Assembly (NCBI GenBank): GCA_002269645.1
Contig: NIVC01001343.1
Location: 62,001 to 126,000 of the forward strand
Direction of reading: 5' to 3'
Origin: Macrostomum lignano
Lineage: Eukaryota
Length of the DNA: 64,000 nucleotides
This document shows positions 30,133-56,837 of this stretch, piece by piece. Each line of letters begins with the position of its first letter. Positions within the stretch are counted from its first letter, which is position 1. A program made the position numbers and the translations under genes. Under the pieces are notes generated by a model. That model worked only from the letters and a program-made list of their open reading frames with translations, did not search any database and was not told the DNA's origin.

Positions 30133-33100
30133 TCAGCACTGACAGTTGTCCAGCGGCCCGCCGCTGTGGTCGCCAGCGCCGCCGCCGCCGCTGCCGCCAA
30201 GGCTCCGAGACCTGCCCGAGAAGGATCCGGCGGTGAACTGCACACCGGATCCCAGCCTCTCCGGATCTACTTCGCCAGACTCAATCTTCGACAAGATCGC
30301 CCTGGCGCAGTGCCCGAACGCGTCTTCAACATTTTCTCCAGTCTTGGCGGAAGTTTCCAGGAAAAGCAGGCAGTTCTGCTGGGCAAACTGGGACGCCTCC
30401 ATCAGGGTGACTTCGCGATCGGCGTCTAGATCGCGTTTATTGCCAATCATCACGATGGCGATGTTGGGGCTGGCCAGGCTGCGGGCATCGCTCAGCCAGT
30501 TGCTCAGCGCGTTGTAGGAATCGCGGGAGGTCACATCGTAGACTAGCAGGGCCCCGGCCGCGCCCCGGTAATAGGATCTGGTCACCGACTTGAACCGCTC
30601 CTGACCGGCCGTGTCCCAGATCTGGGAGGGGCCAGGGGTTGAGACACGTTGCTAGGGTGGATATCAGCTTAGCACTCCCGATAATCTTGTCTACCTCTTC
30701 GTGTCTACTATCTCTTGTCTACCTCTTCGTGTCTACTATCTCTTGTCTACCTCTTCGTGTCTACTATCTCTTGTCTACTGCTTCGTGTCTACTATCTCTT
30801 GTCTACATCTTCGTGTCTACTATCTCTTGTCTACATCTTCGTGTCTACTATTTCTTCTTTACTCATTTGTGTCTACTATCTCTTGTCTACCTCTTCGTGT
30901 CTACTATCTCTTGTCTACTGCTTCGTATCTACTATCTCTTGTCTACCTCTTCGTGTCTACTATCTCTTGTCTACATCTTCGTGTCTACTATCTCTTGTCT
31001 ACCTCTTCGTGTCTACTATTTCTTATTTACTCATTTGTGTCTACTATCTCTTGTCTACTGCTTCGTGTCTACTATCTCTTGTCTACTGCTTCGTATCTAC
31101 TATCTCTTGTCTACCTCTTCGTGTCTACTATCTCTTGTCTACCTCTTCGTGTCTACTATTTCTTATTTACTCATTTGTGTCTACTATCTCTTGTCTACCT
31201 CTTCGTGTCTACTATCTCTTGTCTACTGCTTCGTATCTACTATCTCTTGTCTACCTCTTCGTGTCTACTATCTCTTGTCTACATCTTCGTGTCTACTATC
31301 TCTTGTCTACTGCTTCGTGTCTACTATCTCTTGTCTACATCTTCGTGTCTACTATCTCTTGTCTACCTCTTCGTGTCTACTATCTCTTGTCTACATCTTC
31401 GTGTCTACTATCTCTTGTCTACCTCTTCGTGTCTACTATCTCTTGTCTACCTCTTCGTGTCTACTATCTCTTGTCTACTGCTTCGTGTCTACTATCTCTT
31501 GTCTACCTCTTCGTGTCTACTATCTCTTGTCTACCTCTTCGTGTCTACTATCTCTTGTCTACCTCTTCGTGTTTACTATTTCTTCTCTACTCATTTGTGT
31601 CTACTATCTCTTGTCTACTCCTTTGTGTCTACTATCTCTTGTCTACTCCTTCGTGTCTACTATCTCTTGTCTACCTCTTCGTGTCTACTATCTCTTGTCT
31701 ACCTCTTCGTGTCTACTATCTCTTGTCTACCTCTTCGTGTCTACTATCTCTTGTCTACTCCTTCGTGTCTACTATCTCTTGTCTACCTCTTCGTGTCTAC
31801 TATCTCTTGTCTACTCATTTGTGTCTACTCTCTTGTCTACATCTTCCTGTTTACTATCTCTTGTCTACTGCTTCGTGTCTACTATCTCTTGTCTACCTCT
31901 TCGTGTCTACTATCTCTTGTCTACCTCTTCGTGTCTACTATCTCTTGTCTACCTCTTCGTGTCTACTATCTCTTGTCTACTCATTTGTGTCTACTCTCTT
32001 GTCTACATCTTCCTGTATAATATCTCTTGTCTACCTCTTCGTGTCTACTATCTCTTGTCTACATCTTCGTGTCTACTATCTCTTGTCTACTCCTTTGTGT
32101 CTACTATCTCTTGTCTACCTCTTCGTGTCTACAATCTCTTGTCTACTCCTTCGTGTCTACTATCTCTTGTCTACCTCTTCGTGTCTACTATCTCTTGTCT
32201 ACTCCTTCGTGTCTACTATCTCTTGTCTACCTCTTCGTGTCTACTATCTCTTGTCTACTCATTTGTGTCTACTCTCTTGTCTACATCTTCCTGTTTACTA
32301 TCTCTTGTCTACTGCTTCGTGTCTACTATCTCTTGTCTACCTCTTCGTGTCTACTATCTCTTGTCTACCTCTTCGTGTCTACTATCTCTTGTCTACTCAT
32401 TTGTGTCTACTCTCTTGTCTACATCTTCCTGTATATTATCTCTTGTCTACCTCTTCGTGTCTACTATCTCTTGTCTACCTCTTCGTGTCTACTATCTCTT
32501 GTCTACTCCTTCGTGTCTACTATCTCTTGTCTACATCTTCGTGTCTACTATCTCTTGTCTACTCCTTCGTGTCTACTATCTCTTGTCTACTCCTTCGTGT
32601 CTACTATCTCTTGTCTACCTCTTCGTGTCTACTATTTCTTATTTACTCATTTGTGTCTACTATCTCTTGTCTACCTCTTCGTGTCTACTATCTCTTGTCT
32701 ACTGCTTCGTATCTACTATCTCTTGTCTACTGCTTCGTGTCTACTATCTCTTGTCTACCTCTTCGTGTCTACTATCTCTTGTCTACTGCTTCGTATCTAC
32801 TATCTCTTGTCTACCTCTTCGTGTCTACTATCTCTTGTCTACATCTTCGTGTCTACTATCTCTTGTCTACTGCTTCGTGTCTACTATCTCTTGTCTACAT
32901 CTTCGTGTCTACTATCTCTTGTCTACATCTTCGTGTCTACTATCTCTTGTCTACCTCTTCGTGTCTACTATCTCTTGTCTACCTCTTCGTGTCTACTATC
33001 TCTTGTCTACTGCTTCGTGTCTACTATCTCTTGTCTACCTCTTCGTGTCTACTATCTCTTGTCTACCTCTTCGTGTCTACTATCTCTTGTCTACCTCTTC

Positions 33101-36100
33101 GTGTCTACTATCTCTTGTCTACCTCTTCGTGTCTACTATCTCTTGTCTACCTCTTCGTGTCTACTATCTCTTGTCTACTCATTTGTGTCTACTCTCTTGT
33201 CTACATCTTCCTGTATAATATCTCTTGTCTACCTCTTCGTGTCTACTATCTCTTGTCTACATCTTCGTGTCTACTATCTCTTGTCTACTCCTTTGTGTCT
33301 ACTATCTCTTGTCTACCTCTTCGTGTCTACAATCTCTTGTCTACTCCTTCGTGTCTACTATCTCTTGTCTACCTCTTCGTGTCTACTATCTCTTGTCTAC
33401 TCCTTCGTGTCTACTATCTCTTGTCTACCTCTTCGTGTCTACTATCTCTTGTCTACTCATTTGTGTCTACTCTCTTGTCTACATCTTCCTGTTTACTATC
33501 TCTTGTCTACTGCTTCGTGTCTACTATCTCTTGTCTACCTCTTCGTGTCTACTATCTCTTGTCTACCTCTTCGTGTCTACTATCTCTTGTCTACTCATTT
33601 GTGTCTACTCTCTTGTCTACATCTTCCTGTATAATATCTCTTGTCTACCTCTTCGTGTCTACTATCTCTTGTCTACCTCTTCGTGTCTACTATCTCTTGT
33701 CTACTCCTTCGTGTCTACTATCTCTTGTCTACATCTTCGTGTCTACTATCTCTTGTCTACTCCTTCGTGTCTACTATCTCTTGTCTACCTCTTCGTGTCT
33801 ACTATTTCTTATTTACTCATTTGTGTCTACTATCTCTTGTCTACCTCTTCGTGTCTACTATCTCTTGTCTACTGCTTCGTATCTACTATTTCTTGTCTAC
33901 CTCTTCGTGTCTACTATCTCTTGTCTACATCTTCGTGTCTACTATCTCTTGTCTACTGCTTCGTGTCTACTATCTCTTGTCTACATCTTCGTGTCTACTA
34001 TTTCTTCTTTACTCATTTGTGTCTACTATCTCTTGTCTACCTCTTCGTGTCTACTATCTCTTGTCTACTGCTTCGCATCTACTATCTCTTGTCTACCTCT
34101 TCGTGTCTACTATCTCTTGTCTACATCTTCGTGTCTACTATCTCTTGTCTACCTCTTCGTGTCTACTATTTCTTATTTACTCATTTGTGTCTACTATCTC
34201 TTGTCTACCTCTTCGTGTCTACTATCTCTTGTCTACTGCTTCGTATCTACTATCTCTTGTCTACTGCTTCGTGTCTACTATCTCTTGTCTACCTCTTCGT
34301 GTCTACTATTTCTTATTTACTCATTTGTGTCTACTATCTCTTGTCTACCTCTTCGTGTCTACTATCTCTTGTCTACTGCTTCGTATCTACTATCTCTTGT
34401 CTACCTCTTCGTGTCTACTATCTCTTGTCTACATCTTCGTGTCTACTATCTCTTGTCTACTGCTTCGTGTCTACTATCTCTTGTCTACATCTTCGTGTCT
34501 ACTATCTCTTGTCTACCTCTTCGTGTCTACTATCTCTTGTCTACATCTTCGTGTCTACTATCTCTTGTCTACCTCTTCGTGTCTACTATCTCTTGTCTAC
34601 CTCTTCGTGTCTACTATCTCTTGTCTACTGCTTCGTGTCTACTATCTCTTGTCTACCTCTTCGTGTCTACTATCTCTTGTCTACCTCTTCGTGTCTACTA
34701 TCTCTTGTCTACCTCTTCGTGTTTACTATTTCTTCTCTACTCATTTGTGTCTACTATCTCTTGTCTACCTCTTCGTGTCTACTATCTCTTGTCTACTCCT
34801 TTGTGTCTACTATCTCTTGTCTACTCCTTCGTGTCTACTATCTCTTGTCTACCTCTTCGTGTCTACTATCTCTTGTCTACCTCTTCGTGTCTACTATCTC
34901 TTGTCTACCTCTTCGTGTCTACTATCTCTTGTCTACTCCTTCGTGTCTACTATCTCTTGTCTACCTCTTCGTGTCTACTATCTCTTGTCTACTCATTTGT
35001 GTCTACTCTCTTGTCTACATCTTCCTGTTTACTATCTCTTGTCTACTGCTTCGTGTCTACTATCTCTTGTCTACCTCTTCGTGTCTACTATCTCTTGTCT
35101 ACCTCTTCGTGTCTACTATCTCTTGTCTACCTCTTCGTGTCTACTATCTCTTGTCTACTCATTTGTGTCTACTCTCTTGTCTACATCTTCCTGTATAATA
35201 TCTCTTGTCTACCTCTTCGTGTCTACTATCTCTTGTCTACCTCTTCGTGTCTACTATCTCTTGTCTACCTCTTCGTGTCTACTATCTCTTGTCTACATCT
35301 TCGTGTCTACTATCTCTTGTCTACTCCTTTGTGTCTACTATCTCTTGTCTACCTCTTCGTGTCTACAATCTCTTGTCTACTCCTTCGTGTCTACTATCTC
35401 TTGTCTACCTCTTCGTGTCTACTATCTCTTGTCTACTCCTTCGTGTCTACTATCTCTTGTCTACCTCTTCGTGTCTACTATCTCTTGTCTACTCATTTGT
35501 GTCTACTCTCTTGTCTACATCTTCCTGTTTACTATCTCTTGTCTACTGATTCGTGTCTACTATCTCTTGTCTACCTCTTCGTGTCTACTATCTCTTGTCT
35601 ACCTCTTCGTGTCTACTATCTCTTGTCTACTCATTTGTGTCTACTCTCTTGTCTACATCTTCCTGTATAATATCTCTTGTCTACCTCTTCGTGTCTACTA
35701 TCTCTTGTCTACCTCTTCGTGTCTACTATCTCTTGTCTACTCCTTCGTGTCTACTATCTCTTGTCTACATCTTCGTGTCTACTATCTCTTGTCTACTCCT
35801 TCGTGTCTACTATCTCTTGTCTACTCCTTCGTGTCTACTATCTCTTGTCTACCTCTTCGTGTCTACTATCTCTTGTCTACCTCTTCGTGTTTACTATTTC
35901 TTCTCTACTCATTTGTGTCTACTATCTCTTGTCTACCTCTTCGTGTCTACTATCTCTTGTCTACTCCTTTGTGTCTACTATCTCTTGTCTACTCCTTCGT
36001 GTCTACTATCTCTTGTCTACCTCTTCGTGTCTACTATCTCTTGTCTACCTCTTCGTGTCTACTATCTCTTGTCTACCTCTTCGTGTCTACTATCTCTTGT

Positions 36101-38419
36101 CTACTCCTTCGTGTCTACTATCTCTTGTCTACCTCTTCGTGTCTACTATCTCTTGTCTACTCATTTGTGTCTACTCTCTTGTCTACATCTTCCTGTTTAC
36201 TATCTCTTGTCTACTGCTTCGTGTCTACTATCTCTTGTCTACCTCTTCGTGTCTACTATCTCTTGTCTACCTCTTCGTGTCTACTATCTCTTGTCTACCT
36301 CTTCGTGTCTACTATCTCTTGTCTACTCATTTGTGTCTACTCTCTTGTCTACATCTTCCTGTATAATATCTCTTGTCTACCTCTTCGTGTCTACTATCTC
36401 TTGTCTACATCTTCGTGTCTACTATCTCTTGTCTACTCCTTTGTGTCTACTATCTCTTGTCTACCTCTTCGTGTCTACAATCTCTTGTCTACTCCTTCGT
36501 GTCTACTATCTCTTGTCTACCTCTTCGTGTCTACTATCTCTTGTCTACTCCTTCGTGTCTACTATCTCTTGTCTACCTCTTCGTGTCTACTATCTCTTGT
36601 CTACTCATTTGTGTCTACTCTCTTGTCTACATCTTCCTGTTTACTATCTCTTGTCTACTGCTTCGTGTCTACTATCTCTTGTCTACCTCTTCGTGTCTAC
36701 TATCTCTTGTCTACCTCTTCGTGTCTACTATCTCTTGTCTACTCATTTGTGTCTACTCTCTTGTCTACATCTTCCTGTATAATATCTCTTGTCTACCTCT
36801 TCGTGTCTACTATCTCTTGTCTACCTCTTCGTGTCTACTATCTCTTGTCTACTCCTTCGTGTCTACTATCTCTTGTCTACATCTTCGTGTCTACTATCTC
36901 TTGTCTACTCCTTCGTGTCTACTATCTCTTGTCTACTCCTTCGTGTCTACTATCTCTTGTCTACCTCTTCGTGTCTACTATTTCTTATTTACTCATTTGT
37001 GTCTACTATCTCTTGTCTACCTCTTCGTGTCTACTATCTCTTGTCTACTGCTTCGTATCTACTATCTCTTGTCTACCTCTTCGTGTCTACTATCTCTTGT
37101 CTACATCTTCGTGTCTACTATCTCTTGTCTACTGCTTCGTGTCTACTATCTCTTGTCTACTGCTTCGTGTCTACTATCTCTTGTCTACATCTTCGTGTCT
37201 ACTATCTCTTGTCTACATCTTCGTGTCTACTATCTCTTGTCTACCTCTTCGTGTCTACTATCTCTTGTCTACCTCTTCGTGTCTACTATCTCTTGTCTAC
37301 TGCTTCGTGTCTACTATCTCTTGTCTACCTCTTCGTGTCTACTATCTCTTGTCTACCTCTTCGTGTCTACTATCTCTTGTCTACTCCTTCGTGTCTACTA
37401 TCTCTTGTCTACCTCTTCGTGTCTACTATCTCTTGTCTACCTCTTCGTGTCTACTATCTCTTGTCTACTGCTTCGTGTCTACTATCTCTTGTCTACCTCT
37501 TCGTGTCTACTATCTCTTGTCTACCTCTTCGTGTCTACTATCTCTTGTCTACTCCTTCGTGTCTACTATCTCTTGTCTACCTCTTCGTGTCTACTATCTC
37601 TTGTCTACTCCTTCGTGTCTACTATCTCTTGTCTACATCTTCGTGTCTACTATCTCTTGTCTACTCCTTCGTGTCTACTATCTCTTGTCTACTGCTTCGT
37701 GTCTACTATCTCTTGTCTACATCTTCGTGTCTACTATCTCTTGTCTACCTCTTCGTGTCTACTATCTCTTGTTCACCTCTTCGTGTCTACTATCTCTTGT
37801 CTACCTCTTCGTGTCTACTATCTCTTGTCTACTGCTTCGTGTCTACTATCTCTTGTCTACTCCTTCGTGTCTACTATCTCTTGTCTACCTCTTCGTGTCT
37901 ACTATCTCTTGTCTACCTCTTCGTTTCTACTATCTCTTGTCTACTCTTTCGTGTCTACTATCTCTTGTCTAACTCTTCGTGTCTACTATCTCTTGTCTAC
38001 CTCTTCGTGTCTACTATCTCTTGTCTACTGCTTCGTGTCTACTATCTCTTGTCCACCGTCTTTTATCTATCTTATCTTGTCTACCCTTTCATGTCTTCCC
38101 TCTCCCGTCTACTCTCTCCTGTCTACCGTCTCGTCCACTCTACTGTCTACCCTTTTATAGACACTCTTCTCTACTTCTCTTCTCATAATCTCTCCTGACT
38201 ATGCTCATCATTTACCGCCCTGAGCATCACCTGCAGTTTCACAGTCCGACCATTCACGTCGATAACTTTGCTGCCAAACTCCACTCCGATTGTGTGCGAC
38301 GAATCGGCCTTAAATTTTCGCTCAAGAAACTGGTGCAACAGACAGGATTTACCTGTGCCAGCTGAACCAATTATCAAAAATTTAAACAGGTACTCGTAGG
38401 GATCAGTTGAAGAAGCCAT
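30133..38419 (-). CDS. RAB4: Ras-related GTPase Rab4, 225 aa; exons 38419-38231 and 30621-30133
   Basis: [24 protein letters not shown]...[10 protein letters not shown]...KLQ|[29 protein letters not shown], plus GNKRDL, ETSAK and a C-terminal CQC prenylation motif. The P-loop GSAGTGKS is typical of Rab4. Phase-0 intron CAG|GTGATG ... CCCAG|ATC. Confidence 0.95.
30685..38060. repeat. ~7.4-kb 28-bp minisatellite CTACTATCTCTTGTCTACCTCTTCGTGT filling the Rab4 intron
   Basis: About 260 copies. The unit is a diverged 14+14 dimer and gives stop-free ORFs in all three plus-strand frames. Confidence 0.98.
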
Positions 38420-39057
38420 CTTTGCCTAATAGTTGTTCTTTAATTGGATTAAAATAAGCTGAAAAAAGAATGAAATAAAAATAAAAATACATTAACGCTA
38501 CTTGCAGTAGAGAAACGAATATTAAAGCTAATATAATACAATTAGGAAAAAATACAATATCACGTTTCATACTACTGCTGCTTACACTAAGTAGTACTAT
38601 GAAATACGATATGCAAATTCTTCCAATTAAAAATACAGTAATTAAAATTGAGACAACTTTTTAAACTACAAATGCCTTTCACAAAAAAAAATTTTTGCAT
38701 CAAATGCCTTCATTTATAGGAGTTTTACTTATCGAAATTTTAAAATTTAATTTTAACTCCCCATCGAAGACATTAAAACACAGTGCCATTGGTATAAATT
38801 ACAAATGCTTATTCGATACGAGAACAGTGCAAACACACAAACCAAAAATATCATAACGTAGAAACAAACTTTCTATACATATCGTCATGAGCAAATTAAT
38901 AAAGTTAATTTTCGATACATACCGTCAGTAAAAAAAGCCTAAAATGCATATTTTGCAATAAACACAACACACTCGAACCGCTACTCGTATTTAACGGGTC
39001 ATTGAAGCTAAGTGTAGAAAAAGTACTTGATTCATATCGAAGATAAGTATGGAAATA

Positions 39058-39410: not shown

Positions 39411-39423
39411 AACTAATAATTGT

Positions 39424-39882
39424 CTAAAAGGTACCATCAAGGAAAGAAAATACCGGATGCCAGTTAATAGCCAGTTCAACGTCCTTCTTCGTGACAGTCT
39501 TTCGTTTGCTTTTTACAGCAAAATCGTGGGCAGCTTTGCCCAACTGTTGAATAAACAATTCCGTCGCTTTGGCAACCGCTAGCACGGCTTCTTTATTGAT
39601 CAGACGCGTGTCTGGATCGGCTTTCATAATTAGCTTCATCTTGCTGACCGGTAGGCTGGACAGTTTAACAACTTCATTCTCTTTTTCTGTTTCTGCTAAA
39701 ATAACCGGCTCAGACTCTGGTTCTTCTTCATCCTCGACCAGTTTTTGTCCAGTTTCGATGTCCATGGCCTCGCATTGTTGGTTGTCGTCTTCGTCTATTC
39801 GTTGAGCAGCTTCGAACGGAGTGTCCTCCTTTGGCGTCTCCGTTTCGGTTTCGATGGGATCGGCGTCTGGCTCTGCCGACAT
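39424..39882 (-). CDS. POLE4: DNA polymerase epsilon subunit 4 (H2A-type histone fold), single coding exon, 152 aa
   Basis: LSSLPVSKMKLIMKADPDTRLINKEAVLAVAKATELFIQQLGKAAHDFAVKSKRKTVTKKDVELAI...FSFLDGTF matches the POLE4 pattern (KADPD, KRKT, F.FL.GT C-terminus). It is preceded by an acidic N-terminal tail. Confidence 0.85.
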   Translation of the reverse strand: MSAEPDADPIETETETPKEDTPFEAAQRIDEDDNQQCEAMDIETGQKLVEDEEEPESEPVILAETEKENEVVKLSSLPVSKMKLIMKADPDTRLINKEAVLAVAKATELFIQQLGKAAHDFAVKSKRKTVTKKDVELAINWHPVFSFLDGTF

Positions 39883-40019
39883 GGACTGCAGTCATGTGAA
39901 AGAGAAAAATAACAGCATATTTTACTTTTCGAATGTCGATAATACGCTCGTAGAAAAGAAAATTCTGATACATGTACAGTTTTGCACCACCGGATTCACG
40001 GAATCCGCCAGATCTGCAA

Positions 40020-41612: not shown

Positions 41613-42036
41613 CATTAATGACATTTGTTTTAATTTTAACATCTACATCTAAGACTGAAACAAATAAAGCTTGACTATTAAGGAAATTAAATCATAGACA
41701 GACTCATAACAGTTATTAATAAATTTATTTTAAGTTTACAATCTAAAAAATAGGAGTACAACAATGAATCCGCAAGCTAAGACTAAAATTCTAATTTTAT
41801 GATTACAAAATCAACTGTAAAAGTACACTGTGCAAGAATAGATAAAGCTACAAAGACGCACACATTAAACAGGCTACAAGCTCTAAGTTTTGTTGTTGTA
41901 ATAAATCAAAGAAACATTAAAAAAGACGAAAAATTATAATTACATAAACATTGCGAAATACTCATTAATTCTGCCTACCGAACATCAACTAAAGAAATTC
42001 AACGTCTTTTTTTTGCGAGAAGTAAAATTAAGAAAA

Positions 42037-45000
42037 TCAGACATCGATGGTCATTTTCTTGTGCACATCGAGGGAGCCGACAATGTCGCAGAATTCAGCG
42101 TAAGAAATTTTTCCGTCACCGTCTTTGTCAGCAAAAATGATTGTTTTATTAACAATCTGCTGCAGTTGAGCGTCTTTCAGATTGCTGCCAACCATCATCT
42201 TCAGCACCTATGAAATTGTTCAGGTAGTTTCGCGATTAATGAGACACATTTGAGATGTCACTTGAGTAGCATTTCAGACACATTTGAGATGTCATTTGAG
42301 TAGCATTTCAGACACATTTGAGATGTCTCTTGAGTAGCATTTCAGACACATTTGAGATGTCATTTGAGTAGCATTTCAGACACATTTGAGATGTCTCTTG
42401 AGTAGCATTTCAGACACATTTGAGATGTCTCTTGAGTAGCATTTTAGACACATTTGATATGTCACCTGAGTAGCATTTCAGACACATTTGAGATGTCATT
42501 TGAGTAGCATTTCAGACACATTTGAGATGTCACTGAGTAGCATTTCAGACACATTTGAGATGTCATTTGAGTAGCATTTCAGACACATTTGAGATGTCAT
42601 TTGAGTAGCATTTCAGACACATTTGAGATGTCATTTGAGTAGCATTTCAGACAAATTTGAGATGTCATTTGAGTAGCATTTTAGACAAATTTGAGATGTC
42701 ACTTGAGTAGCATTTCAGACACATTTGAGATGTCATTTGAGTAGCATTTCAGACAAATTTGAGATGTCATTTGAGTAGCATTTTAGACAAATTTGAGATG
42801 TCATTTGAGTAGCATTTCAGACAAATTTGAGATGTCACTGAGTAGCATTTCAGACACATTTGATATGTCACTTGAGTAGCATTTCAGACAAATTTGAGAT
42901 GTCACTGAGTAGCATTTCAGACACATTTGAGATGCCTCTTGAGTAGCATTTCAGACAAGGTTGCGATGCCCCTGAGCAGTCCCTGAGATACTCAATATTT
43001 CACAGAGCATACAAAGTGCCCTAAGCAAGCCTCACCTGAAAGAGCTCCCCATTGCTAATGAAGCCATCCTTGTCCATATCGTAGATTCGAAACGCAAAAC
43101 GCAGTTTAGCCTCTTTGTCGCCTCTGACAGAGAATTGCGACATGCCTAAATTGAAGGGAAGTGAGAGTATTTTAAATCACTTTGTGCTTCTCAATAACTG
43201 CATAAATCCCATTATATCAACCGGGAGAGAATTTCTCTTAGGTCTCATCTAGATAAATCGGGTAAGAATTTCACCAGCCTCGTAGGAGAATTTGGTGAGA
43301 ATCTCACCAGCCTCATGGGAGAATTGAGTTAGAATCTCATCAGTCTCATAAAATGGGGTGAAAATGGGAGAATCGGGTGAGAATCTCATCACTCTCATAG
43401 GAGAATCAGGGGAGTATCTTATCAGTCTGATGGAATGGGGTGAGAATCTCACCAGTCTCATAGGAGACTGGGGTGAGAATTTCATCAGTCTCATAGAAGA
43501 ATGGGGTGAGAATCTTTTCAGTCTCATAGGAGAATGGGGTGAGAATCTCACCAGTCTCATAGGAGAATCGGGCGAGAATCTCACCAGTTTCATTAGAGAC
43601 TGGGGTGAGAATCTCATCAGTCTCACAGGAGACTGGGTGAGAATCTTTTCAGTCTCATAGGAGAATGGGCTGAGAATCTCACCGGTCTCATAGGAGAATG
43701 GGGTGAGAATCTCACAGTCTCATAGGAGAATGAGGTGAGAATCTCATCAGTCTCATAAAAGAATCGGGTGAGAATCTCATCAGTCTTATAGGAGAATCGG
43801 GTGAGAATCTCATCAGTCTTATAGGAGAATCGGGTGAGAATCTTATCAGTCTCTTGAATATCGTAGGAGAAAAAATGCAGTTTATTCAATACAAACCCTG
43901 GAATTCCAAAGGGAAGATGTTTAACCAAAGCCCCAGTAACTGTCAATCATAGTAAACAGTGCCACTAGCTTAGGACGCTCCGGCATATCAGCATAGACAA
44001 TATCGCATACACAAACTGTCTATATATACAAATTGGTAGAGAGACCAGAAGTTAGGCTAGAGAAAGACGAAAAGCTTCCAACGGCTTGATGATGACTTTT
44101 TGGATGCCAGTCTTGAAACCTTTTCTCTTTTTCTTATATATTCATTGCGCCGACCTAGCAACTTCCTTGTATAGGTTCTGCTAGACCTTCCTTCGTGCCC
44201 TCATCTCCCCCTCTCTCTCCTGTTTCTTCCTTCAATAGTTCAAGCACAAAGTCGATCGCTTTACTTTTTTAACATTAAAGCCCTTCGATCCGCACCAGGA
44301 AAGGATAAGGAAGGGAGGAGAGAGGAGAAGAGATGCGGGAGAGAGAGGGGGCGAATGGAGAGGATAAATAAGTGAAAAAATCCCCGCAAACAAGCCATAA
44401 TCAGTGCGTGTTCGCAAACCGAAGTTCCTGCTTCCTAAGCCTTCGCTTTTTTGCTTTCTTTTTCTGCGCCCGCCTATTTGGCCAAGATTTCCTGCATGGC
44501 TTCAATCCTATTTCTGTTTAAGCGGATTTAAGCTTCGTTAAACTGGCTAAATTAGGTTTTGGAAGCTGATTATTGTTAGGATAATACTTGATTCAGTGCT
44601 GGCTACATTGGGGAAGGGGTGAAAGATTTGATGCTGGGGTTGGTGTACATTGGGGAAGGGGTGGAAGATTTGATGCTGGGGTTGGTGTACATTGGGGAAG
44701 GGGTGGAAGATTTGGGGCTGGGGTTGGTGTAAATTGTGGAAGGGGTGGAAGATTTGATGCTGGGGTTGGTGTACATTGGGGAAGGGGTGGAAGATTTGGG
44801 GCTGGGGTTGGTGTACATTGGGGAAAGGGTGGAAGATTTGGGGCTGGGGTTGGTGTAAATTGTGGAAGGGGTGGAAGATTTGATGCTGGGGTTGGTGTAC
44901 ATTGGGGAAGGGGTGGAAGATTTGGGGCTGGGGTTGGTGTACATTGGGGAAAGGGTGGAAGATTTGGGGCTGGGGTTGGTGTAAATTGTGGAAGGGGTGG

Positions 45001-46717
45001 AAGATTTGATGCTGGGGTTGGTGTACATTGGGGAAGGGGTGGAAGATTTGGGGCTGGGGTTGGTGTACATTGGGGAAGGGGTGGAAGATTTGAGGGTTTG
45101 GGGTTGGTGTACATTGAGGAAGGGGTGAAAGATTTTAGACAGGGTTCGGTGTAAATTCTATAGCTTTAAGTTTGGGCAAATGCTTATCTTTAAAAAACAA
45201 GTTTGGTGTATTCTAAGATTTAAAAGTTCAAAACTCAGTTTTTTAGTAAAAAAAGAAGCGATGGAATAGGAAAGAAATAGAACCAGGCACAGCAGCTTCC
45301 TTTAGATCTAAACAATGACTTGATTATTATTACTATTATTTTTTTGCAACTGAAAGCATTCGAACGAAGTCTAGCAAGCTAGCAAAAGTACAAGCTCAGC
45401 CTAAACAGATGTTAGAAAGCTGGAACCGCGGGCTAATGGATATGGGAAGAAACGACAGGGGGACAAGACGACAGACAGGAGAAAGTGAGCAACAGGGTAT
45501 AGGGGATCACGAAATGAAGCCAAGCGTGTAGACAGAAAGACGGTGAAGCTGTTATAACACTTTATAATAATAAGTACGTAATATTCACTATATACAATCG
45601 TGAACAAGACATTTTATGTTTGAAAAAAACTACAACTAAAAAACTACAACACAAAATAATTAGGTATTAGGAGTCATTGGAGCGCGAGTAGTCATAAAAG
45701 CGCCACATACTAGTGTACTCGCATATGCATACGAAAGTCCAGCGCAGCAATTAAACAACAATTCCAGTTCAAATTGCCTTTACGTAAGTAAAACTTTAGT
45801 AAGAAAAAGATAAAGCAAAGGAATAAGGGGGAAACATACTTAATCTCACACTGAGATGAGATTACATGCTCAATCTCACACTGAGATGAGATCACATACA
45901 CATACCCAATCTCACACTGAGATGAGATCACATACACATACCCAATCTCACCCTGAGATGAGATCACATACCCAATCTCACCCTGAGATGAGATCACATA
46001 CCCAATCTCACCCTGACATGAATTCACAGACCCAATCTCATCCTGAGATGAGATCACATACCGATCTCAACCTGAGATGAATTCACAGACCCAATCTCAT
46101 CCTGAGATGAGATCACATTCCCAATCTCACCCTGACATGAATTCACAGACCCAATCTCATCCTGAGATGAGATCACATTCCCAATCTCACCCTGACATGA
46201 ATTCACAGACCCAATCTCATCCTGAGATGAGATCACATTCCCAATCTCACCCTGACATGAATTCACAGACCCAATCTCATCCTGAGATGAGATCACATTC
46301 CCAATCTCACCCTGACATGAATTCACAGACCCAATCTCATCCTGAGATGAGATCACGGACCCAATCTCACACTGAGACGAGATCACATACCCAATCTCAC
46401 CCTGAGATGAGATCACATACCCAATCTCACACTGAGATGAGATCGCAGACGCAGAACCAGAGATGAAACAGCAGCAAGACAAACTCACCCTGAATAAACT
46501 CTTTAAAATCGACCTCTCCATTCTGATCAGTATCGAAGATGTCAATCACTCGCTGCACCAGCGGGTTCTGCTGCAACTCAGGCAGCCGCAGGAACTCTTC
46601 AATGCTCAGCGAGCCGCTGCCATCCAAGTCGATCTTCTTAAACCGTTTACCCAACCGTCGGAGTTCTTCGCTATCAAAATGAGCGCACAGTTCCGGAATG
46701 GAAAGTTCGCTACCCAT
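42037..46717 (-). CDS. PPP3R1: Calcineurin subunit B, 169 aa; exons 46717-46489, 43145-43036, 42207-42037
   Basis: MGSELS (myristoylation motif)...[56 protein letters not shown]|[36 protein letters not shown]|[56 protein letters not shown]. Four EF-hands. Exons 2 and 3 were translated by hand and have canonical splice sites. Confidence 0.97.
42243..42958. repeat. 34-bp minisatellite GAGTAGCATTTCAGACACATTTGAGATGTCATTT (calcineurin B intron 2)
   Basis: About 21 copies filling most of the 828-nt intron. Confidence 0.95.
43265..43855. repeat. 33-bp minisatellite GAGAATCTCATCAGTCTCATAGGAGAATGGGGT (calcineurin B intron 1)
   Basis: About 18 imperfect copies. Confidence 0.9.
44598..45150. repeat. 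42-bp G-rich minisatellite GGGGTTGGTGTACATTGGGGAAGGGGTGGAAGATTTGATGCT (calcineurin B intron 1)
   Basis: About 13 copies. Confidence 0.93.
45838..46445. repeat. 30-bp minisatellite ATCTCACACTGAGATGAGATCACATACCCA with a 60-bp dimeric core (calcineurin B intron 1)
   Basis: About 20 copies; perfect 60-bp period at 46061-46330. Confidence 0.93.
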
Positions 46718-46967
46718 CTTTCAGCCAGAGAAGAGAGGCGGGGGAAGAAGACGACAGAACTGCAAAAGCCCCCGTCTGTTGCTTTCGGCTTGCCAGGAAT
46801 AGTAGAAGAAGCGGGGAAAGGTGCAATATAAAGCGGCAAGATGGATGCGTTCTACTGGCTCGTGTTTCCCACCAACCAAAGAGGCCTAGAAACAGAAGCC
46901 CGCGGAGTGACTGCTCCTGTCTAAGCCACTGCTTTCCAATCCCACATAATTCTAGACTGGCGTAGCG

Positions 46968-48870: not shown

Positions 48871-48968
48871 TAACCTACAGCCTATTAGTTAGCGAAACTT
48901 GCTATAAATGTAAATCAATCAAGTACATCGCGTACTACAGTGACCACAAGCTAGCCATAAATCAATCA

Positions 48969-51900
48969 TCATTCGGCCTTCGGTCGTTCCCGGCGCAGGA
49001 TGCCCTTAGCGTCGGCTTGAATGAGTTTGGCCAGATCGGCAATCAGATTGCGATTCAGAGCGGCAGAAGCGCACAACAGGCCGCCCATCATGCCGCCAAC
49101 GAAGCCGCAGATGGCCACGTCTTGGCCAGTGAGCAGGAGTCCCGGCGGGCCCATCTCCGGCCGCAGTTGAGCGCACGAATCCGGAGCTAAGCGACTGAGG
49201 CTGTGGTCTAAGCCGTAGATTTCGCCGCGTGGCGAATTGATGTAGTGCTGGTTGGTGAGCGGCGTGCCCACCTGGGAGGGGGGAGGTGAGACAGGAGGGG
49301 CTCAGGTGTTATGCACTTCTATGTGTTCCTGGTGACAAATCCTGGCCTGCTTAATTAATCTGGGGGATCTAGTAGCTTACCCCGGAGGATCAGGTAGCTT
49401 ACCCTGGGGATCTGGTAGTTTAATCTGGGAGGCTGGTAGTTTATTCTGGGAGGCTGGTAGCTTAATCTGGGGATCTGGTAGCTTAATCTGGGGGATCTGG
49501 TAGCTTAATCTTGGGATCTGGTAGCTTAATCTGGGGGATCTAGTAGCTTACCCCGGAGGATCAGGTAGCTTACCCTGGGGATCTGGTAGTTTAATCTGGG
49601 AGGCTAGTAGTTTATTCTGGGAGGCTGGTAGCTTAATCTGGGGATCTGGTAGCTTAATCTGGGGGATCTGGTAGCTTAATCTTGGGATCTGGTAGCTTAA
49701 TCTGGGGGATCTAGTAGCATACCCCGGAGGATCTAGTAGTTTATTCTGGTGATCTGGGGATCTGGTAGTTTAATCTCGGAGGCTGGTAGTTTATTCTGGG
49801 ATGCTGGTAGCTTAATCTGGGGATGTGGTAGCTTAATCTGCGGGATCTGGTAGCTTAATCTGGGGATCTGGTAGCTTAATCTGGGGGTCTGGTAGTTTAA
49901 TCTGGGGGATCTAGTAGCTTACCCCGGAGGATCTGGTAGTTTATTCTGGTGATCTGGGGATCTGGTAGCTTACTCCTGGGGATCTGGTAGTTTAATCTGG
50001 GAGGCTAGTAGTTTAATCTGGGAGGCTAGTAGTTTAATCTGGGAGGCTGGTAGTTTAATCTGGGAGGCTAGTAGTTTAATCTGGGAGGCTGGTAGTTTAA
50101 TCTGGGAGGCTGGTAGTTTAATCTGGGAGGCTAGTAGTTTAATCTGGGAGGCTGGTAGTTTAATCTGGGAGGCTGGTAGTTTATTCTGGGAGGCTGGTAG
50201 CTTAATCTGGAAATCTGGGAGGCTGGTAGCTTAGTCGGGGGATCTGGGAGGCTGGTAGCTTAATCTGGGGATCTGGGAGGGGTGAAAGCTTCATCTGGGA
50301 ATCTGGGAGGGTGAAAGCTTTATCTGGGAATCTGGGAGGGTTGAAGCTTCATCTGGGAATCTGGGAGGGTGGAAGCTCTTTTTATCGGTGATGCGGTAGA
50401 TTAATTGAAAGGATCTGGAAATGTCAAGATCTGTAGTGATGGTGGCCCAGCAACAAGGAAGAATTAACAATGCCCCCTTCCCAAAGCCTCACCTGAAACA
50501 GTTCGACTTCAAGATCGGCCACAGCCGGTACCTGGCACTTGACCAGCTCCCACATCCGCCTGCCGATAGCGTTCTTCAACTCGTTATAATCTCTGCCCCT
50601 GTGACCGCTGCGGCCCTCCTGATACTGGCTGAACCAGTCCCAGTTCGCGAAGGTGACAATCGCACAAGTCAGCCGGTCATCTCCGCGCCTCCTCGGCCAG
50701 CTGGGATCCTTCAGCGAGGGAAACGAAGCGAATAGCAGAGGCGGATCAGCCGCTGCGGCCTCCTGAGGATCAAGGCTAAGATAGGCATTAACAATCGACT
50801 GCAGATCCACAGTCTCAGCCGCTGAGCTGTCAGACGGAGAAAGCAGCCACAGATTGCGACCGCGGATGTCGTCAAATGCCGGATCAGTGGAGGCGCACCT
50901 TCCCGGAGGCAGACGCAGTCCGATGAACACAGACATTGCGCCGTGGCCGGAGCGGAGCTGGCAGTCGGTTAGGGTTCGGGGAATTCGAGACCTGCCAGGT
51001 TTGCCAGGTGTGGTGTACTCATTTAGTGCACGCGTACTTATGAGGCGAACTTGTGTATAATGCTGCTTGCTATGTTGAAACTTCTCTCCACTCTCCCAGA
51101 TTCGGCTACCGCCCTCCCAGATTAAGTTGCCACCCTCCCAGATGAAGCTACCCTCCTCTCAAATTAGGTTGCCACCCTCCCAGATTAAGCTGCCCTCCTC
51201 TCAGATTAAGCTACCACCCTCCCCAGATTAAGCTACCGCCCTCCCAGATTTGGCTACCAGATTAGACTACCGCTCTCTCTCTTAAATTCCTTCAAAGTGT
51301 CTAAAGCATCCTAAACTGTGTCTAAAGTGTCCTAAACTGTGTCTAAAGTGTCCTAAACTGTGTCTAAAGTGTCCTAAACTATGTCTAAAGTGTCCTAAAC
51401 TGTGTCTAAAGCATCCTAAACTGTGTCTAAAGTGTCCTAAACTGTGTCTAAAGTGTCCTAAACTATGTCTAAAGTGTCCTAAACTGTGTCTAAAGCATCC
51501 TAAACTGTGTCTAAAGTGTCCTAAACTGTGTCTGAAGTGTCCTAAACTATGTCTAAAGTGTCCTAAACTATGTCTAAAGTGTCCTAAACTGTGTCTAAAG
51601 CATCCTAAACTGTGTCTAAAGTGTCCTAAACTGCGTCTAAAGTGTCCTAAACTATGTCTAAAGTGTCCTAAACTGTGTCTAAAGTGTCCTAAACTGTGTC
51701 TAAGACTCTAAAGTGTCCAAAACTGTGTCTAAAGTGTCCTAAACTGTGTCTAAAGTGTCCTAAACTGTGTCTAAAGCATCCTAAACTGTGTCTAAAGTGT
51801 CCAAAACTATGTCTAAAGTGTCCTAAACTGTGTCTAAAGTGTCCTAAACTGTGTCTAAAGTGTCCTAAACTGTGTCTAAAGTGTCCTAAACTGTGTCTAA

Positions 51901-54900
51901 AGTGTCATAAACTGTGTCTAAAGTGTCCTAAAATATGTCTAAAGTGTCCTAAACTGTGTCTAAAGTGTCCTAAACTATGTCTGAAGTGTCCTAAACTGTG
52001 TCTAAAGTGTCCTAAACTGTGTCTAAAGTGTCCAAAACTGTGTCTAAAGTGTCCTAAATTATGTCAAAACTATGTCTAAACTATGTCTAAAGTGTCCTAA
52101 ACTGTGTCTAAAGTGTCCAAAACTATGTCTAAAGTGTCCTAAACTGTGTCTAAAGTGTCCTAAACTATGTCTGAAGTGTCCTAAACTGTGTCTAAAGTGT
52201 CCTAAACTGTGTCTAAAGTGTCCAAAACTGTGTCTAAAGTGTCCTAAATTATGTCAAAACTATGTCTAAACTATGTCTAAAGTGTCCTAAACTGTGTCTA
52301 AAGTGTCCAAAACTATGTCTAAAGTGTCCTAAACTGTGTCTAAAGTGTCCTAAACTGTGTCTAAAGTGTCCTAAACTGTGTCTAAAGTGTCTTAAACTAT
52401 GTCTAAAGTGTCCTAAACTGTGTCTAAAGTGTCCTAAACTATGTCTAAAGTGTCCTAAACTATGTCTAAAGTGTCCTTAACTATGTCTAAAGTGTCCTAA
52501 ACTGTGTCTAAAGTGTCCTAAACTGTGTCTAAAGTGTCCTAAACTGTGTCTAAAGTGTCCTAAACTGTTTCTAAAGTGTCTTAAATGCATGTAGTGTCTC
52601 GAATGTGTCTCAACCATACTAAGACCATAAAAAGGCTTACAATAATATAATATTTCCCACAAGACTCACTTCTCCAACGCAGTCTGAGGCAGCAGTTTAG
52701 CAGTATTAATCAGCCCGGCATCAGAGATGATCAGCGGGGCCAGAACAGTGTATTCACCATCTGACCTTTGCACTGTGACGCCAACCGCTCTACCAGTAGT
52801 TTCGTTGCACACAATAGACGACACTGGGGCTCGAACCAAGGCCCTACCGCCAGCTTTTTCAATGACTGGCACGGAGCAGAATGAAATTTCGCTAGGGCCG
52901 CCAATAGGGTAGAAGCCGCCCTGACGAAGGAAGTGATTCAATAGTAGCGCGTGCAGCACTACGGAGGTTTCACCTGGCGGTGTGCCGTAGTCGCCGAAAC
53001 AATAGGCCAATGTACTTTTCAGCGATTCGCTGGAGATGTGCTGGTCTAGGTATTGCTTCAGGCTGATGTGCAGGTAGCTGAGCAGGGGATAGGGGATTGT
53101 GGCCATAGCAGGTCATGTAAAAAGAAGACGAACTTTGTACACAGAAAACATATAGTCATAGAGAAGAGTCATAGGGATAGAAAGGCTCATACAGAGACTA
53201 TAGTCATAGAGTCATATCAGGTCATAGAGATAGAAAGGCTCATACAGAGACTAAAGTCACAAAGAGTCATATCAGGTCATAGGGATAGAATGGCTCATAC
53301 AGAGACTAAAGTCACAAAGAGTCATATCAGGTCATAGGGATAGAATGGCTCATACAGAGACTAAAGTCATACAGGTTATTGACAGGTCTGACAGGTTATT
53401 GGGAGAGAAAGGCTCATAAAGAGGCTATAGTCTCAAAGAGTAATATCAGGTCATAGGGATAGAATGGCTCATACAGAGGCTATAGTAATGGCTCGAAGCG
53501 CAAGTTATGACTTATGACAACAGCAATGCGGTCATACATAAAGAAACGCTCATACACTAAAAAAGGTCATATAATAGAGCTCATGCAGTACGTATCTCAG
53601 TACAAGCCAGGTAAACTACTAAAAGTAGCCTAATACTCACCGAAAATAGGCTGAAAACAAGCCGCATAAGCCAGACTTGATCAGCAGCCTAGCCAAAGGC
53701 AATGGCAACAATTTCAATCCCCAATAGAGCTTTGAGCCGCGTTTCAATCGATCTAGCAGACTGAAAAACGCCTCGATACCAGCTGCATCGTCTGGCCACT
53801 CCTGAGCCAGACGCTTGGCGAACTCTTTCCGATCGCCAGTCACCAGTACGCTGCGATTCTTGCCGCCGCCATCGACGCAGCCAACAATCACTCTGTCAAA
53901 GTCGACATCCAAAGGCTGCCACATCAGTTTACCATCGGTTAGCTGATCAGCTAGGCAGCGTACAAACGACCCGGGTCGCATCTCGCCAATATAATGTATA
54001 CCAACATCGAATTCGTAGCCTTTATCAACGAAAGTGTGACAACAGCCGCCAATAACGTCGTGCTGTTCCAATACTAGCACTCGTTTGCGAGCCCTAGCCA
54101 ATAGGGTGGCCGCGGTTAGACCGCCAATGCCGGAGCCAATCACAATGGCGTCTAGGCGCTCGGGTATGCGAGACCCCGTGAAGTTTTGGCGTAGGACAGA
54201 ATCGCGAGCGGACTGCACAGTTTGGAGGGGGATGGGGGTTCAATTGCTAAAAATAGATTAGATGTACACCCAATGCTATATGAGATAAAGCATATCAACG
54301 TTATCAGTCAGCCATAAAACGCCAGCGCAACACCTCGCCCAAGTCCTCTACCCCACTCTGCTATCAGTCAGCCATAAACCCCAGGCCCAGCGTAACACCC
54401 CGCCCAAGTCCTCTACCCCACTCTGCTATCAGTCAGCCATAAACCCCAGGCCCAGCGCAACACCTCGCCCAAGTCCTCTATCCCACTCTGCTATCAGTCA
54501 GCCATAAACCCCAGGCCCAGCGTAACACCCCGCACAAGTCCTCTACCCCACTCTGCTATCAGTCAGCCATAAACCCCAGGCCCAGCGTAACACCCCGCCC
54601 AAGTCCTCTATCCCACTCTGCTATCAGTCAGCCATAAACCCCAGGCCCAGCGTAACACCCCGCCCAAGTCCTCTACCCCACTCTGCTATCAGTCAGCCAT
54701 AAACCCCAGGCCCAGCGTAACACCCCGCCCAAGTCCTCTACCCCACTCTGCTATCAGTCAGCTACAAATAAGTTGAGACTTAATACAATTAAGTTTAAGG
54801 CATCTTCACAGTAATAGACGAACCTGATTGTTGATAACATCATCCGCGGTTCTCTCTGGTTTTTTAACCAGTAAACTAGGCAGTACAAACGGATTCCTAC

Positions 54901-55009
54901 CAGGCTTCTTGCCATAAATAGTAATGCTAATTACGTATAGAACAATATAAAGAGACAGGCCAATAACTCCAACAAGCCACATTGAAATCGAGATTCCAAA
55001 TAACGCCAT
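48969..55009 (-). CDS. RETSAT: All-trans-retinol 13,14-reductase (retinol saturase; phytoene desaturase-type FAD oxidoreductase), ~655 aa; exons 55009-54824, 54212-53641, 53077-52670, 50991-50493, 49271-48969
   Basis: N-terminal hydrophobic anchor, then PGRNPF, LDAIVIGSGIGGLTAA (dinucleotide-binding), VLEQHDVIGGCCHTF...EFDVGIHYIG, GGFYPIGGPSEI, SFPSLKDPSW, GTPLTNQHYINSPRGEIYGLDH and GQDVAICGFVGGMMGG. Splice phases 0, 2, 2, 0 are all compatible. Confidence 0.93.
49352..50378. repeat. ~21-bp minisatellite GGATCTGGTAGCTTAATCTGG / GGGAGGCTGGTAGTTTAATCT (RETSAT intron 4)
   Basis: About 45 imperfect copies. Confidence 0.92.
51095..51270. repeat. Inverted copy of the intron-4 repeat (CTCCCAGATTAAGCTACC) in RETSAT intron 3
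   Basis: About 7 copies, reverse-complementary to GGTAGCTTAATCTGGGA. Confidence 0.8.
51295..52582. repeat. 21-bp minisatellite AAACTGTGTCTAAAGTGTCCT (RETSAT intron 3)
   Basis: About 60 copies; source of the spurious CPKLCLK ORFs. Confidence 0.96.
53150..53470. repeat. 55-bp minisatellite (TCATAGGGATAGAATGGCTCATACAGAGAC...) (RETSAT intron 2)
   Basis: 5-6 imperfect copies. Confidence 0.85.
54300..54762. repeat. 65-bp minisatellite (GCTATCAGTCAGCCATAAACCCCAGGCCCAGCG...) (RETSAT intron 1)
   Basis: Period 65 (54360, 54425, 54490); about 7 copies. Confidence 0.93.
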
Positions 55010-55834
55010 TTTGCTTTAATCTGTAAATGAAATAAACAAAATATGTTGATAGTGTTGTTATTTCACTGAGCTTTCTAGATGATAGTAAATATTGGTGCTG
55101 ACTAGTTATAAATATAGACTAAAGCTACTACTAAATATAAAATCACAAGTAGTCTAATAGAAAAAACTGGAAAAACAAAGTCTTAAGGACACTTGTGTTG
55201 CAAAAACATCGAATTAAGGACGGATTAAGGTTTTTAGATTATTTAGCTCGTATTTATTAATCTGACAAAAAAGGAATCAATAATAAAAATCATTTTAAAA
55301 TAACACATTTCAATTCAATTAGGAATAATCAATATAGTCGCAATAATAGCTGAATTGCAAATGTTGAAATAACACAGACAGATACAAAAATCACACATCT
55401 TGAAATCAAAATAACTTTGAAAAGTAAGGCATAAACAATAACAACACACGGATTATTTAATCAGGTGCAGTTACAAGATAATTGCTTGCGAAATAAGAAT
55501 ACTTATTAGCACAGCTATCAGAAAATTGTTGGAAAAACATCTAGCTAGTATTATGGAAATTTTTCTCTCATCTTTTCCTCTATCTATAAATAGACCAAAA
55601 AAGCAGACTCTGGGAAAATATACATGGCTGTCTAGATAACACAAATATGTAAAAACTATAAACTAATAACTATTCGAAAAACAGGCAAGGTCGGGTAAAT
55701 AGGGAAGCTACAGGTTGTATAAAAATAGTTCTAAAAAAACTGCCTTATTAAAGCAACGACAGAGGAAGACAAGGATAAACATTTATAACCCTTCACCATT
55801 TCTAGTAGGCGTGCACATGCCCAGCTTCCTCAAA

Positions 55835-56185
55835 TCCTTCAGAGACGGCGCCACAACTCCCCTCAGATCCTTCAGAGACGGCGCCACAACTCCCCTCAGA
55901 TCCTTCAGAGACGGCGCCACAACCCCCTAAGATCCTTCAGACGGCGCCACAACTCCCCTCAGATCCTTCAGAGACGGCGCCACAACCTCCTCAGATCCTT
56001 CAGAGACGGCGCCACAACCCCCTAAGATCCTTCAGACAGCGCCACAACCACCCCTCAGATCCTTCAGAGACGGCGCCACAACTCCCCTCAGATCCTTCAG
56101 ACGGCGCCACAACTCCCCTCAGATCCTTCAGACGGCGCCACAACCCCCCCCCCTCAGATCCTTCAGAGACGGCGCCACAACCCCT
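55835..56185. repeat. 33-bp minisatellite CAGATCCTTCAGAGACGGCGCCACAACTCCCCT
   Basis: About 10 copies between SMKR1-like and RETSAT. Confidence 0.92.
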
Positions 56186-56492: not shown

Positions 56493-56768
56493 TCACTTCT
56501 TCTTTTTCTTTCCTTTTTTGCCTTTCTTGCCTTTCTTCTTTGAAGTGCTCGGTCTGCTAGCAAAGCCGCGCAATTCCAAAGCATCAACGACTCCGTGAGC
56601 AATCATGTAGATGTTCTCCATTGCTGCTGGGGACATAATGTCCACTACAGGCTTCTCAGCTTTAGCGGCCGCAGCCGATTTGCCACGCTTTTTGCCAGAC
56701 TTTTTGCCAGATTTTTTGCCAGACTTTTTGCCGCCAAGGCGGCCGCCAGCGGATTTGGCTTTGCGCGG
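56493..56768 (-). CDS. SMKR1: Small lysine-rich protein 1-like (91 codons + stop; no start codon in this exon)
   Basis: Hand translation: [91 protein letters not shown]. The core VDI.SPAAM.N.Y.IAH.V.D.L.LRGF is the SMKR1 motif as I recall it. Preceded by the acceptor ...CCCACCCCACAG|. Missed by the ORF track because it has no upstream start codon. Confidence 0.85.
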
Positions 56769-56837
56769 CTGTGGGGTGGGCGTTGAAAATGGGATAAGGA
56801 AATCGATATGCTGGTTTAAAGGTGATCGCTAATCTAC

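Follow-up and report, generated by a model that had tools for sequence, protein, structure and literature searches.

The 64,000-nucleotide stretch of Macrostomum lignano DNA considered here (the window, identical in sequence to positions 62001-126000 of contig NIVC01001343.1 in the Mlig_3_7 assembly, GCA_002269645.1) carries on its minus strand, head-to-tail, genes for an SMKR1-like protein, RETSAT, calcineurin B (CNB), a POLE4-like protein and Rab4, and together these probably form a cluster of spliced leader (SL) trans-spliced genes, of the operon type known from this species. SL addition is well supported, if indirectly shown, at the first two genes, where traces of the leader can be read in coding potential and in the assembly itself, and the acceptor motifs make it likely at the other three. 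How far co-transcription would extend is a separate matter. That all five genes derive from a single precursor is possible, at somewhat less than an even chance, and a division into two or three shorter polycistrons, e.g. SMKR1-RETSAT and POLE4-Rab4, is less likely; taken pair by pair, co-transcription of POLE4 and Rab4 is supported and that of SMKR1 and RETSAT plausible. An earlier note on the window had proposed a polycistronic unit in an organism that it guessed to be SL trans-splicing. The guess was right, the source being M. lignano with its 35-nt SL and its operons. The polycistron has gained from SL traces at two of the five acceptors, from a transcriptional-unit prefix common to POLE4 and Rab4 and from adjusted spacers below 1 kb, and has lost from the separate naming of the CNB and RETSAT units.

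M. lignano is a free-living flatworm, and its Mlig_3_7 assembly (NIVC01000000) comes from Wudarski et al. 2017 (PMC5730564). It has a single 35-nt SL, CGGTCTCTTACTGCGAAGACTCAATTTATTGCATG, which ends in AUG, and a trans-acceptor motif [T/C]TNCAG (YTNCAG below); 30% of its genes are trans-spliced and about 15% have been assigned to operons, the predicted operons having two genes in 75% of cases, three in 18% and a maximum of 9 (PMC5730564, PMC8629364). Tandem repeats and transposons inflate the spacers within these operons (PMC5730564, PMC8629364), and when repeats are subtracted the spacer has a mode of ~100 bp, with 1 kb used as the operon cut-off (PMC8629364).

Rebuilt gene models give five intact genes. 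The products of RETSAT, CNB, POLE4 and Rab4 are exact GenBank M. lignano proteins (with BOX15_Mlig... names) whose family assignment is supported by Pfam domains, 37 SMKR1 homologues were found, several of them labelled 'small lysine-rich protein 1', and the POLE4-like protein, with PDB neighbours of the NF-YC/Dpb3 class, is 41% identical to human POLE4 across the whole histone fold. Its open reading frame (ORF) has exactly one occurrence in the gene index, on NIVC01001343.1. Models, GenBank proteins, domains and homologues bear out the five minus-strand genes initially proposed, and stop-to-start gaps first put at ~1.5, 2.25, 2.15 and 1.0 kb measure 1483, 2251, 2154 and 1004 nt (SMKR1-RETSAT, RETSAT-CNB, CNB-POLE4 and POLE4-Rab4). 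The whole locus is present as three near-identical copies, in the window, on NIVC01001407.1 (copy B) and on NIVC01000567.1 (copy C), with identical gene order and unique DNA that is 95-100% identical among them. Neither the gene models nor the GenBank tables of the three copies place an opposite-strand gene inside the cluster, and the five genes are adjacent, in the same orientation and uninterrupted, one of the features by which operons are recognized in PMC8629364, next to an SL trans-spliced downstream gene in each pair and a repeat-adjusted distance below 1000 bp.

With the SMKR1-like gene the start codon itself is at issue. Its exon opens CCG CGC AAA directly after cccaccccacAG, and upstream its frame has a stop at 56831 and no ATG before the exon. 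The exon spans the full length of the homologues, and the leader-terminal ATG joined to it gives MPRKAK..., like the homologue N-termini (MPSKAK, MPGKRK, MPKKSA and MKKKSG, i.e. MPxKxK or MKKK). In copies B and C the GenBank coding sequence (CDS) is a single-exon, 5'-partial entry of 91 or 94 residues that begins immediately after the AG. For the Mlig_3_7 annotation, transcripts were cut 5' at SL-read peaks by TBONE before use of TransDecoder, and a 5'-partial ORF at an acceptor is what would be expected of a trans-splice site at which the leader brings the AUG. The features of an 'slORF', namely an SL that ends in AUG, an in-frame acceptor, an AUG-less ORF and a homologue-matching product, are all found, and the sequence predicts translation from an initiator AUG supplied by the SL (M-PRKAK...). 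An acceptor just before each start, as had been noted, thus holds for RETSAT, CNB, POLE4 and Rab4, and needs amending for SMKR1, where the genome has no start codon. On NIVC01001343.1 the gene (56493-56768, minus strand) is unannotated in GenBank, unlike its paralogous copies; lacking a start codon in the genome, it escapes ordinary gene callers. Hypothetical versions of SMKR1 and POLE4 extended by the SL AUG had no match in the protein collection.

These features bear directly on the proposal that the acceptors are the 3' ends of cis-introns in 5' untranslated regions (UTRs), with non-coding first exons in the spacers and with neither trans-splicing nor an operon. For SMKR1 it would require an upstream exon ending in ATG, and no ATG/GTRAG donor (a slash marks a splice junction) is present in the 7.2 kb upstream; the single 5'-partial exon of the GenBank entries is a further difficulty, as is the SL imprint at RETSAT described below, and trans-splicing affects 45% of the M. 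lignano genes conserved in human (PMC5730564, PMC8629364). On the other side, a pyrimidine tract plus AG near a start cannot separate cis from trans, flatworm acceptors often serve both splicing modes (PMC12582326), and CNB, POLE4 and Rab4 are without a direct SL trace. Upstream of the genes other than SMKR1, GT sites are too frequent to inform. For the cluster as a whole cis-introns are very improbable. The earlier view of them as an 'equally simple' explanation is effectively excluded for SMKR1 and RETSAT, and survives for the other three genes.

At RETSAT, the evidence is of a different type, being an apparent imprint of the leader in the reference. Up to the junction, the window has CATTTACAG at this acceptor, against CATTTACTG for copy B and CATTGCATG for copy C. 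The bases next to the 11-nt leader in copy C, ATTGCATG, are identical to the final 8 nt of the SL, and copy B has a leader base at position -2 (a single A>T), so that the RETSAT AG is destroyed in two of the three copies. Within the 70 nt before each start, the only acceptor site to vary among copies is that of RETSAT itself; the Rab4 acceptor region has a few substitutions, with the AG retained. Four consecutive substitutions to leader bases, in DNA otherwise ~97% identical, cannot be ordinary divergence. Mlig_3_7 was polished by Pilon with both Illumina DNA reads and STAR-mapped RNA-seq (PMC5730564), and polishing with the RNA-seq reads is the most likely source: because the genomic acceptor was already leader-like (ATT...G), SL reads would have aligned through the junction and 'corrected' the reference. 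Real retro-conversion from SL-bearing cDNA is a less likely source. On either account, there would have been mRNAs carrying the leader from the junction 55021/55020 of the window. A comparable case, in which the assembly has leader sequence at the 5' terminus of a gene that is trans-spliced, has been described by Ustyantsev & Berezikov (PMC8629364). Comparison of the three copies gave no imprint at the other four acceptors, as expected because the sequence upstream of them is unlike the leader.

Two observations on RETSAT are separate from its junction. Copy C RETSAT (L006:10001-16044) is represented in GenBank by a 395-aa truncated protein, Mlig002530g1, and tblastn shows five intact exons, a mis-annotated acceptor at exon 4 being the probable reason for the truncation. 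A Logan transcript (SRR30276804) of another Macrostomum species, from the orthologue of a second RETSAT paralogue, begins (positions 1-14) with CAATTTATTGCATG, the 3' end of the M. lignano leader, which by this match would be common to M. lignano and at least one other Macrostomum species.

For the remaining genes, the case for trans-splicing comes from the acceptors. The acceptor positions and leader lengths that had been given for the cluster (0, 11, 42, 3, and 39 or 6 nt) are exact. Each of the four genomic start codons has YTNCAG at most 51 nt upstream, and because only 8% of the minus-strand ATGs in the window carry it, the joint chance is about 4e-5; acceptors at the four genomic starts exceed chance. 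The SMKR1 acceptor, CCACAG, has the AG and lacks the full motif. An SL AUG is in frame at POLE4 (M-S-M-S-A-E...) and at the 38426 acceptor of Rab4; at CNB it opens an upstream ORF (uORF) of 13 codons whose end is 3 nt short of the ATG, at the 38459 acceptor of Rab4 an 11-codon uORF, and at RETSAT a 30-codon uORF that is out of frame and overlapping. The leader reading frame is diagnostic for SMKR1 only. Exact-protein look-up gave no M. lignano transcript contigs for the cluster genes, which only the GenBank genome carries. In a genomic Logan contig of 1082 nt (SRR24204725), which contains the first CNB exon of a related genome or paralogue, a TTTCAG acceptor precedes the ATG by 58 nt, with AATAAA ~350 nt further upstream, and the CNB leader sequence itself is not conserved in it.

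Evidence for transcription across gene boundaries comes from annotation. The six-digit prefix of Mlig_3_7 names denotes a cluster, at 95% identity, of assembled 'transcriptional units', and.gN the genes cut out of them. In copy C, POLE4 is Mlig006136g5 and Rab4 Mlig006136g6, the window Rab4 being Mlig006136g2; because the prefix Mlig006136 is common to both genes, at least one assembled unit held POLE4 together with Rab4. Chimeric gene models serve as operon indicators in parasitic flatworms (PMC12582326), and like the chimeras described there two older UniProt/WormBase-type models, A0A1I8FFL7 and A0A1I8I0T3, fuse CNB, POLE4 and Rab4 via cryptic donors and trans-acceptors. A0A1I8I0T3 passes from POLE4 (...INWHP, with a cryptic GT donor) to the TTAG/GCAAAG ATG of Rab4, and A0A1I8FFL7 from the end of CNB (...KKMTID) to the /TCC ATG of POLE4, continuing into Rab4. 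The CNB-POLE4 and POLE4-Rab4 joins link a cryptic donor, located among the final codons of the first gene, to the acceptor of the next; the join of A0A1I8FFL7 into Rab4 is a frameshifted splice that lands mid Rab4 exon 1. With regard to that exon, its donor is CAG/GTGATG, and a stronger-looking donor, GCG/GTAAAT, lies 15 nt downstream (38216-38231, minus strand). Older UniProt models use the latter, inserting VMLRA into the conserved Rab4 motif KLQIWDTAG, and it may be an alternative or a decoy donor.

The spacers are the second consideration. That much of them is tandem repeat, as was claimed for the stop-to-start gaps, is partly right: Tandem Repeats Finder (TRF) repeats account for 24%, 44%, 48% and 29% of the four stop-to-acceptor distances, the remainders being 1117, 1227, 1109 and 680 nt. 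There are one or two canonical poly(A) hexamers per spacer, and measured from hexamer to acceptor all four adjusted spacers (which are estimates) fall below the 1 kb cut-off and above the ~100-bp mode. The first is set by the AATAAA at 55258, 232 nt before the RETSAT acceptor. No poly(A) imprints of RNA-seq polishing were seen near the candidate hexamers. Spacer lengths vary among the window and copies B and C (spacer 1: 1483, 1870 and 2093 nt; spacer 3: 2154, 2244 and 3871 nt) because repeat copy numbers differ, the unique blocks being 95-100% identical, and this fits spacer repeats as neutral filler. The Rab4 intron is an extreme in this regard: at 7609 nt, against 723 and 1708 nt in copies B and C, it consists almost wholly of a 28-bp minisatellite (267 copies, 7.4 kb, 30685-38126), and the array must have expanded or contracted very recently given such differences.

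The boundaries of the cluster are similar in all three copies, with a gene-free AT-rich region at one edge and a convergent 7tm_7 gene at the other. At least 7 kb of gene-free DNA with 28% GC lies upstream, and within 10 kb upstream of RETSAT the SMKR1-like gene is the only annotated gene in any copy. The 25-bp minisatellite next to the SMKR1 acceptor is also in copies B and C, with different copy numbers.

All five genes could instead be SL trans-spliced from promoters of their own, each with a private outron, in what would be a neighbourhood and not an operon. About 60% of SL trans-spliced M. lignano genes are outside operons (PMC8629364), ~0.5-0.9 kb of unique DNA is available ahead of the CNB and POLE4 acceptors, a TATA-like TTTATAT occurs ~70 nt before the CNB acceptor, and RETSAT and CNB each have their own transcriptional-unit name. 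The common prefix of POLE4 and Rab4, the mere ~230 nt from SMKR1 hexamer to RETSAT acceptor, the position of all four repeat-adjusted spacers below the published cut-off and the chance of ~1 in 16 that five genes would be co-oriented argue the other way, and separate promoters throughout are rather unlikely.

The operon reading nevertheless has much to contend with beyond the commonness of trans-splicing outside operons. RETSAT, CNB and the copy B POLE4 have their own unit prefixes, the published assembly having left them unjoined (transcriptional units tend to break at repeat-rich spacers according to Ustyantsev & Berezikov 2021, PMC8629364), and units of the StringTie type can merge neighbours via overlapping UTRs. 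The UniProt chimeras go back to an older assembly rich in indels and could be artefacts of ab initio prediction, one of them having the frameshifted stretches typical of such an assembly. Poly(A) sites are guessed from hexamers, adjusted spacers 2 and 3 (~0.7-0.9 kb) are well above the ~100-bp mode with room for promoters, and internal promoters may be present. Because their unique DNA is 95-100% identical, the order kept among the paralogous copies is not, as far as their sequences go, independent evidence, and for the same reason footprinting via the three loci is powerless. An orthologous locus of another species was not reached, a POLE4 word-index search returning only the cluster itself; RETSAT matches from other Macrostomum species were rejected for synteny as orthologues of a different paralogue, and a long ENA contig with an SMKR1 homologue had no RETSAT gene next to it. 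Cluster gene IDs and names had no match in the supplements of the M. lignano papers.

In its fullest form, which is advanced tentatively, the operon would be a ~27-kb five-gene polycistron with kilobase minisatellite spacers, up to ~1.8 kb between 3' end formation and SL addition, and a first cistron whose start codon is leader-supplied. Transcription by RNA polymerase II would begin ahead of the SMKR1-like gene, the AT-rich DNA on the far side of the 25-bp minisatellite being the probable place, and would continue through the cluster in part at least and probably in full. Cleavage and polyadenylation at the 3' end of each cistron would free its mRNA, and each following ORF would receive the 35-nt SL at an AG acceptor that precedes it by 0-42 nt, the terminal AUG of the leader doubling as start codon in the first cistron. 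The single promoter and the poly(A) sites are presumed steps in this scheme, and the long spacers would be short operon spacers inflated by fast-evolving minisatellites.

In C. elegans, polycistronic pre-mRNAs of unrelated, mostly housekeeping genes are resolved by 3' end formation together with SL trans-splicing, a specialised SL2 serving downstream genes across ~100-nt spacers. The present cluster is similar in being composed of functionally unrelated, mostly housekeeping genes and in the SL-resolved polycistron proposed for it. It differs from the SL2 type, with one SL in M. lignano and raw stop-to-acceptor distances of ~1.0-2.2 kb that include minisatellites. If true, a kilobase-spacer five-gene polycistron would be unlike the tight coupling in nematode operons.

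The closer parallel is with the operons of M. lignano itself (Wudarski et al. 2017, PMC5730564; Ustyantsev & Berezikov 2021, PMC8629364), with which species, assembly, SL and YTNCAG acceptor are shared, as are conserved housekeeping-type genes on one strand and repeat-inflated spacers that adjust to below 1 kb. Unlike most of them, the cluster is at the rare end with five genes, and its estimated spacers of 230-880 nt exceed the ~100-bp mode. Use of an SL AUG as initiator is established in Schistosoma mansoni (Cheng et al. 2006, J Biol Chem 281:733, as cited in PMC9851317 and PMC12582326), and the SMKR1-like ORF is like that case in lying in frame directly after the acceptor with no AUG of its own; unlike the Schistosoma work, its translation from the SL AUG is here deduced from sequence. 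No mention of SL-AUG initiation was found in the M. lignano papers on SL and operons.

Since operons and SL trans-splicing are already established genome-wide in M. lignano, and the cluster belongs to a class already catalogued there, it has little weight beyond annotation in general terms. In particular respects it may be of use. It offers a test locus for how far poly(A) site and trans-acceptor may separate in a working operon, in a species where transgenesis works, and the SMKR1-like gene is a clean candidate for a conserved protein with its start codon solely in the spliced leader. The RETSAT imprint is most likely a Mlig_3_7 reference error to flag, and such imprints are minable genome-wide as marks of trans-splice sites.

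Table 1. Coordinates (window numbering unless a copy is named) and properties of the cluster and its flanks
Feature	Position	Strand	Remarks
SMKR1-like cistron	56493..56768	-	single exon 56768-56493; 91 codons + stop; without genomic ATG
RETSAT (all-trans-retinol 13,14-reductase-like)	48969..55009	-	655 aa; 5 coding exons; introns minisatellite-rich
RETSAT coding exons	55009-54824, 54212-53641, 53077-52670, 50991-50493, 49271-48969	-	
Calcineurin B regulatory subunit (CNB)	42037..46717	-	169 aa; 3 coding exons 46717-46489, 43145-43036, 42207-42037
POLE4-like histone-fold protein	39424..39882	-	152 aa; single exon 39882-39424
Rab4	30133..38419	-	225 aa; 2 coding exons 38419-38231, 30621-30133; 7609-nt intron
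SMKR1 AG acceptor, cccaccccacAG/CCGCGC	56769..56770	-	putative SL trans-splice site
RETSAT acceptor TTACAG/	55021..55026	-	11-nt leader
CNB acceptor TTGCAG/	46760..46765	-	42-nt leader
POLE4 acceptor CTGCAG/	39886..39891	-	3-nt leader
Rab4 acceptor TTTCAG/	38459..38464	-	39-nt leader; motif-matching candidate
Alternative Rab4 acceptor TTAG/	38426	-	6-nt leader; used by UniProt A0A1I8I0T3
RETSAT imprint	L005:9982-9990 (copy B, NIVC01001407.1), L006:9982-9990 (copy C, NIVC01000567.1)		window equivalent 55021-55029
SMKR1-RETSAT spacer			stop-acceptor 1471 nt; TRF 354 nt; hexamer-acceptor 232 nt repeat-adjusted
RETSAT-CNB spacer			stop-acceptor 2208 nt; TRF 981 nt; hexamer-acceptor 878 nt repeat-adjusted
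CNB-POLE4 spacer			stop-acceptor 2150 nt; TRF 1041 nt; hexamer-acceptor about 700-800 nt repeat-adjusted
POLE4-Rab4 spacer			stop-acceptor 964 nt; TRF 284 nt; hexamer-acceptor 287 nt repeat-adjusted
AATAAA, candidate SMKR1 poly(A) signal	55253..55258	-	sole canonical hexamer conserved in the 3 copies of spacer 1
AATAAA, candidate CNB poly(A) signal	41724..41729	-	307 nt after stop codon
ATTAAA (29117) + AATAAA (29027)	29022..29117	-	~1.0-1.1 kb after Rab4 stop; candidate unit end
33-bp minisatellite	55828..56181	.	SMKR1 3' region / spacer 1
25-bp minisatellite, 68 copies	56829..58525	.	directly upstream of SMKR1 acceptor, presumably within outron
AT-rich (28% GC) gene-free region	58526..62500	-	upstream of cluster; putative promoter + outron start

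Matches to the 3' end of the SL elsewhere were set aside, two 8-mers at 1840-1847 (minus strand) and 2745-2752 (plus strand) being at chance frequency with no gene context, and a 9-mer in copy B lying inside a 44-bp repeat of spacer 4. No SL RNA gene, Rfam family or tRNA was found within the 64-kb window.

Directly downstream of the cluster is a (TCTA)n microsatellite of ~2150 units (8.6 kb, 20049-28636). Arrays after Rab4 (29763-30015) and before POLE4 (40033-40623) have the same GGCGGATTCT-type core, with periods of 15 and 20, and look like members of a single dispersed minisatellite family. The neighbours further on are a 7tm_7 chemoreceptor-like ORF (16119-17213, plus strand), convergent on the cluster, long ORFs of 806 aa (7288-9708, minus strand) and 569 aa (10727-12436, plus strand) with no Pfam match, and an exon encoding a fibrinogen C-terminal domain (822-1325, minus strand).

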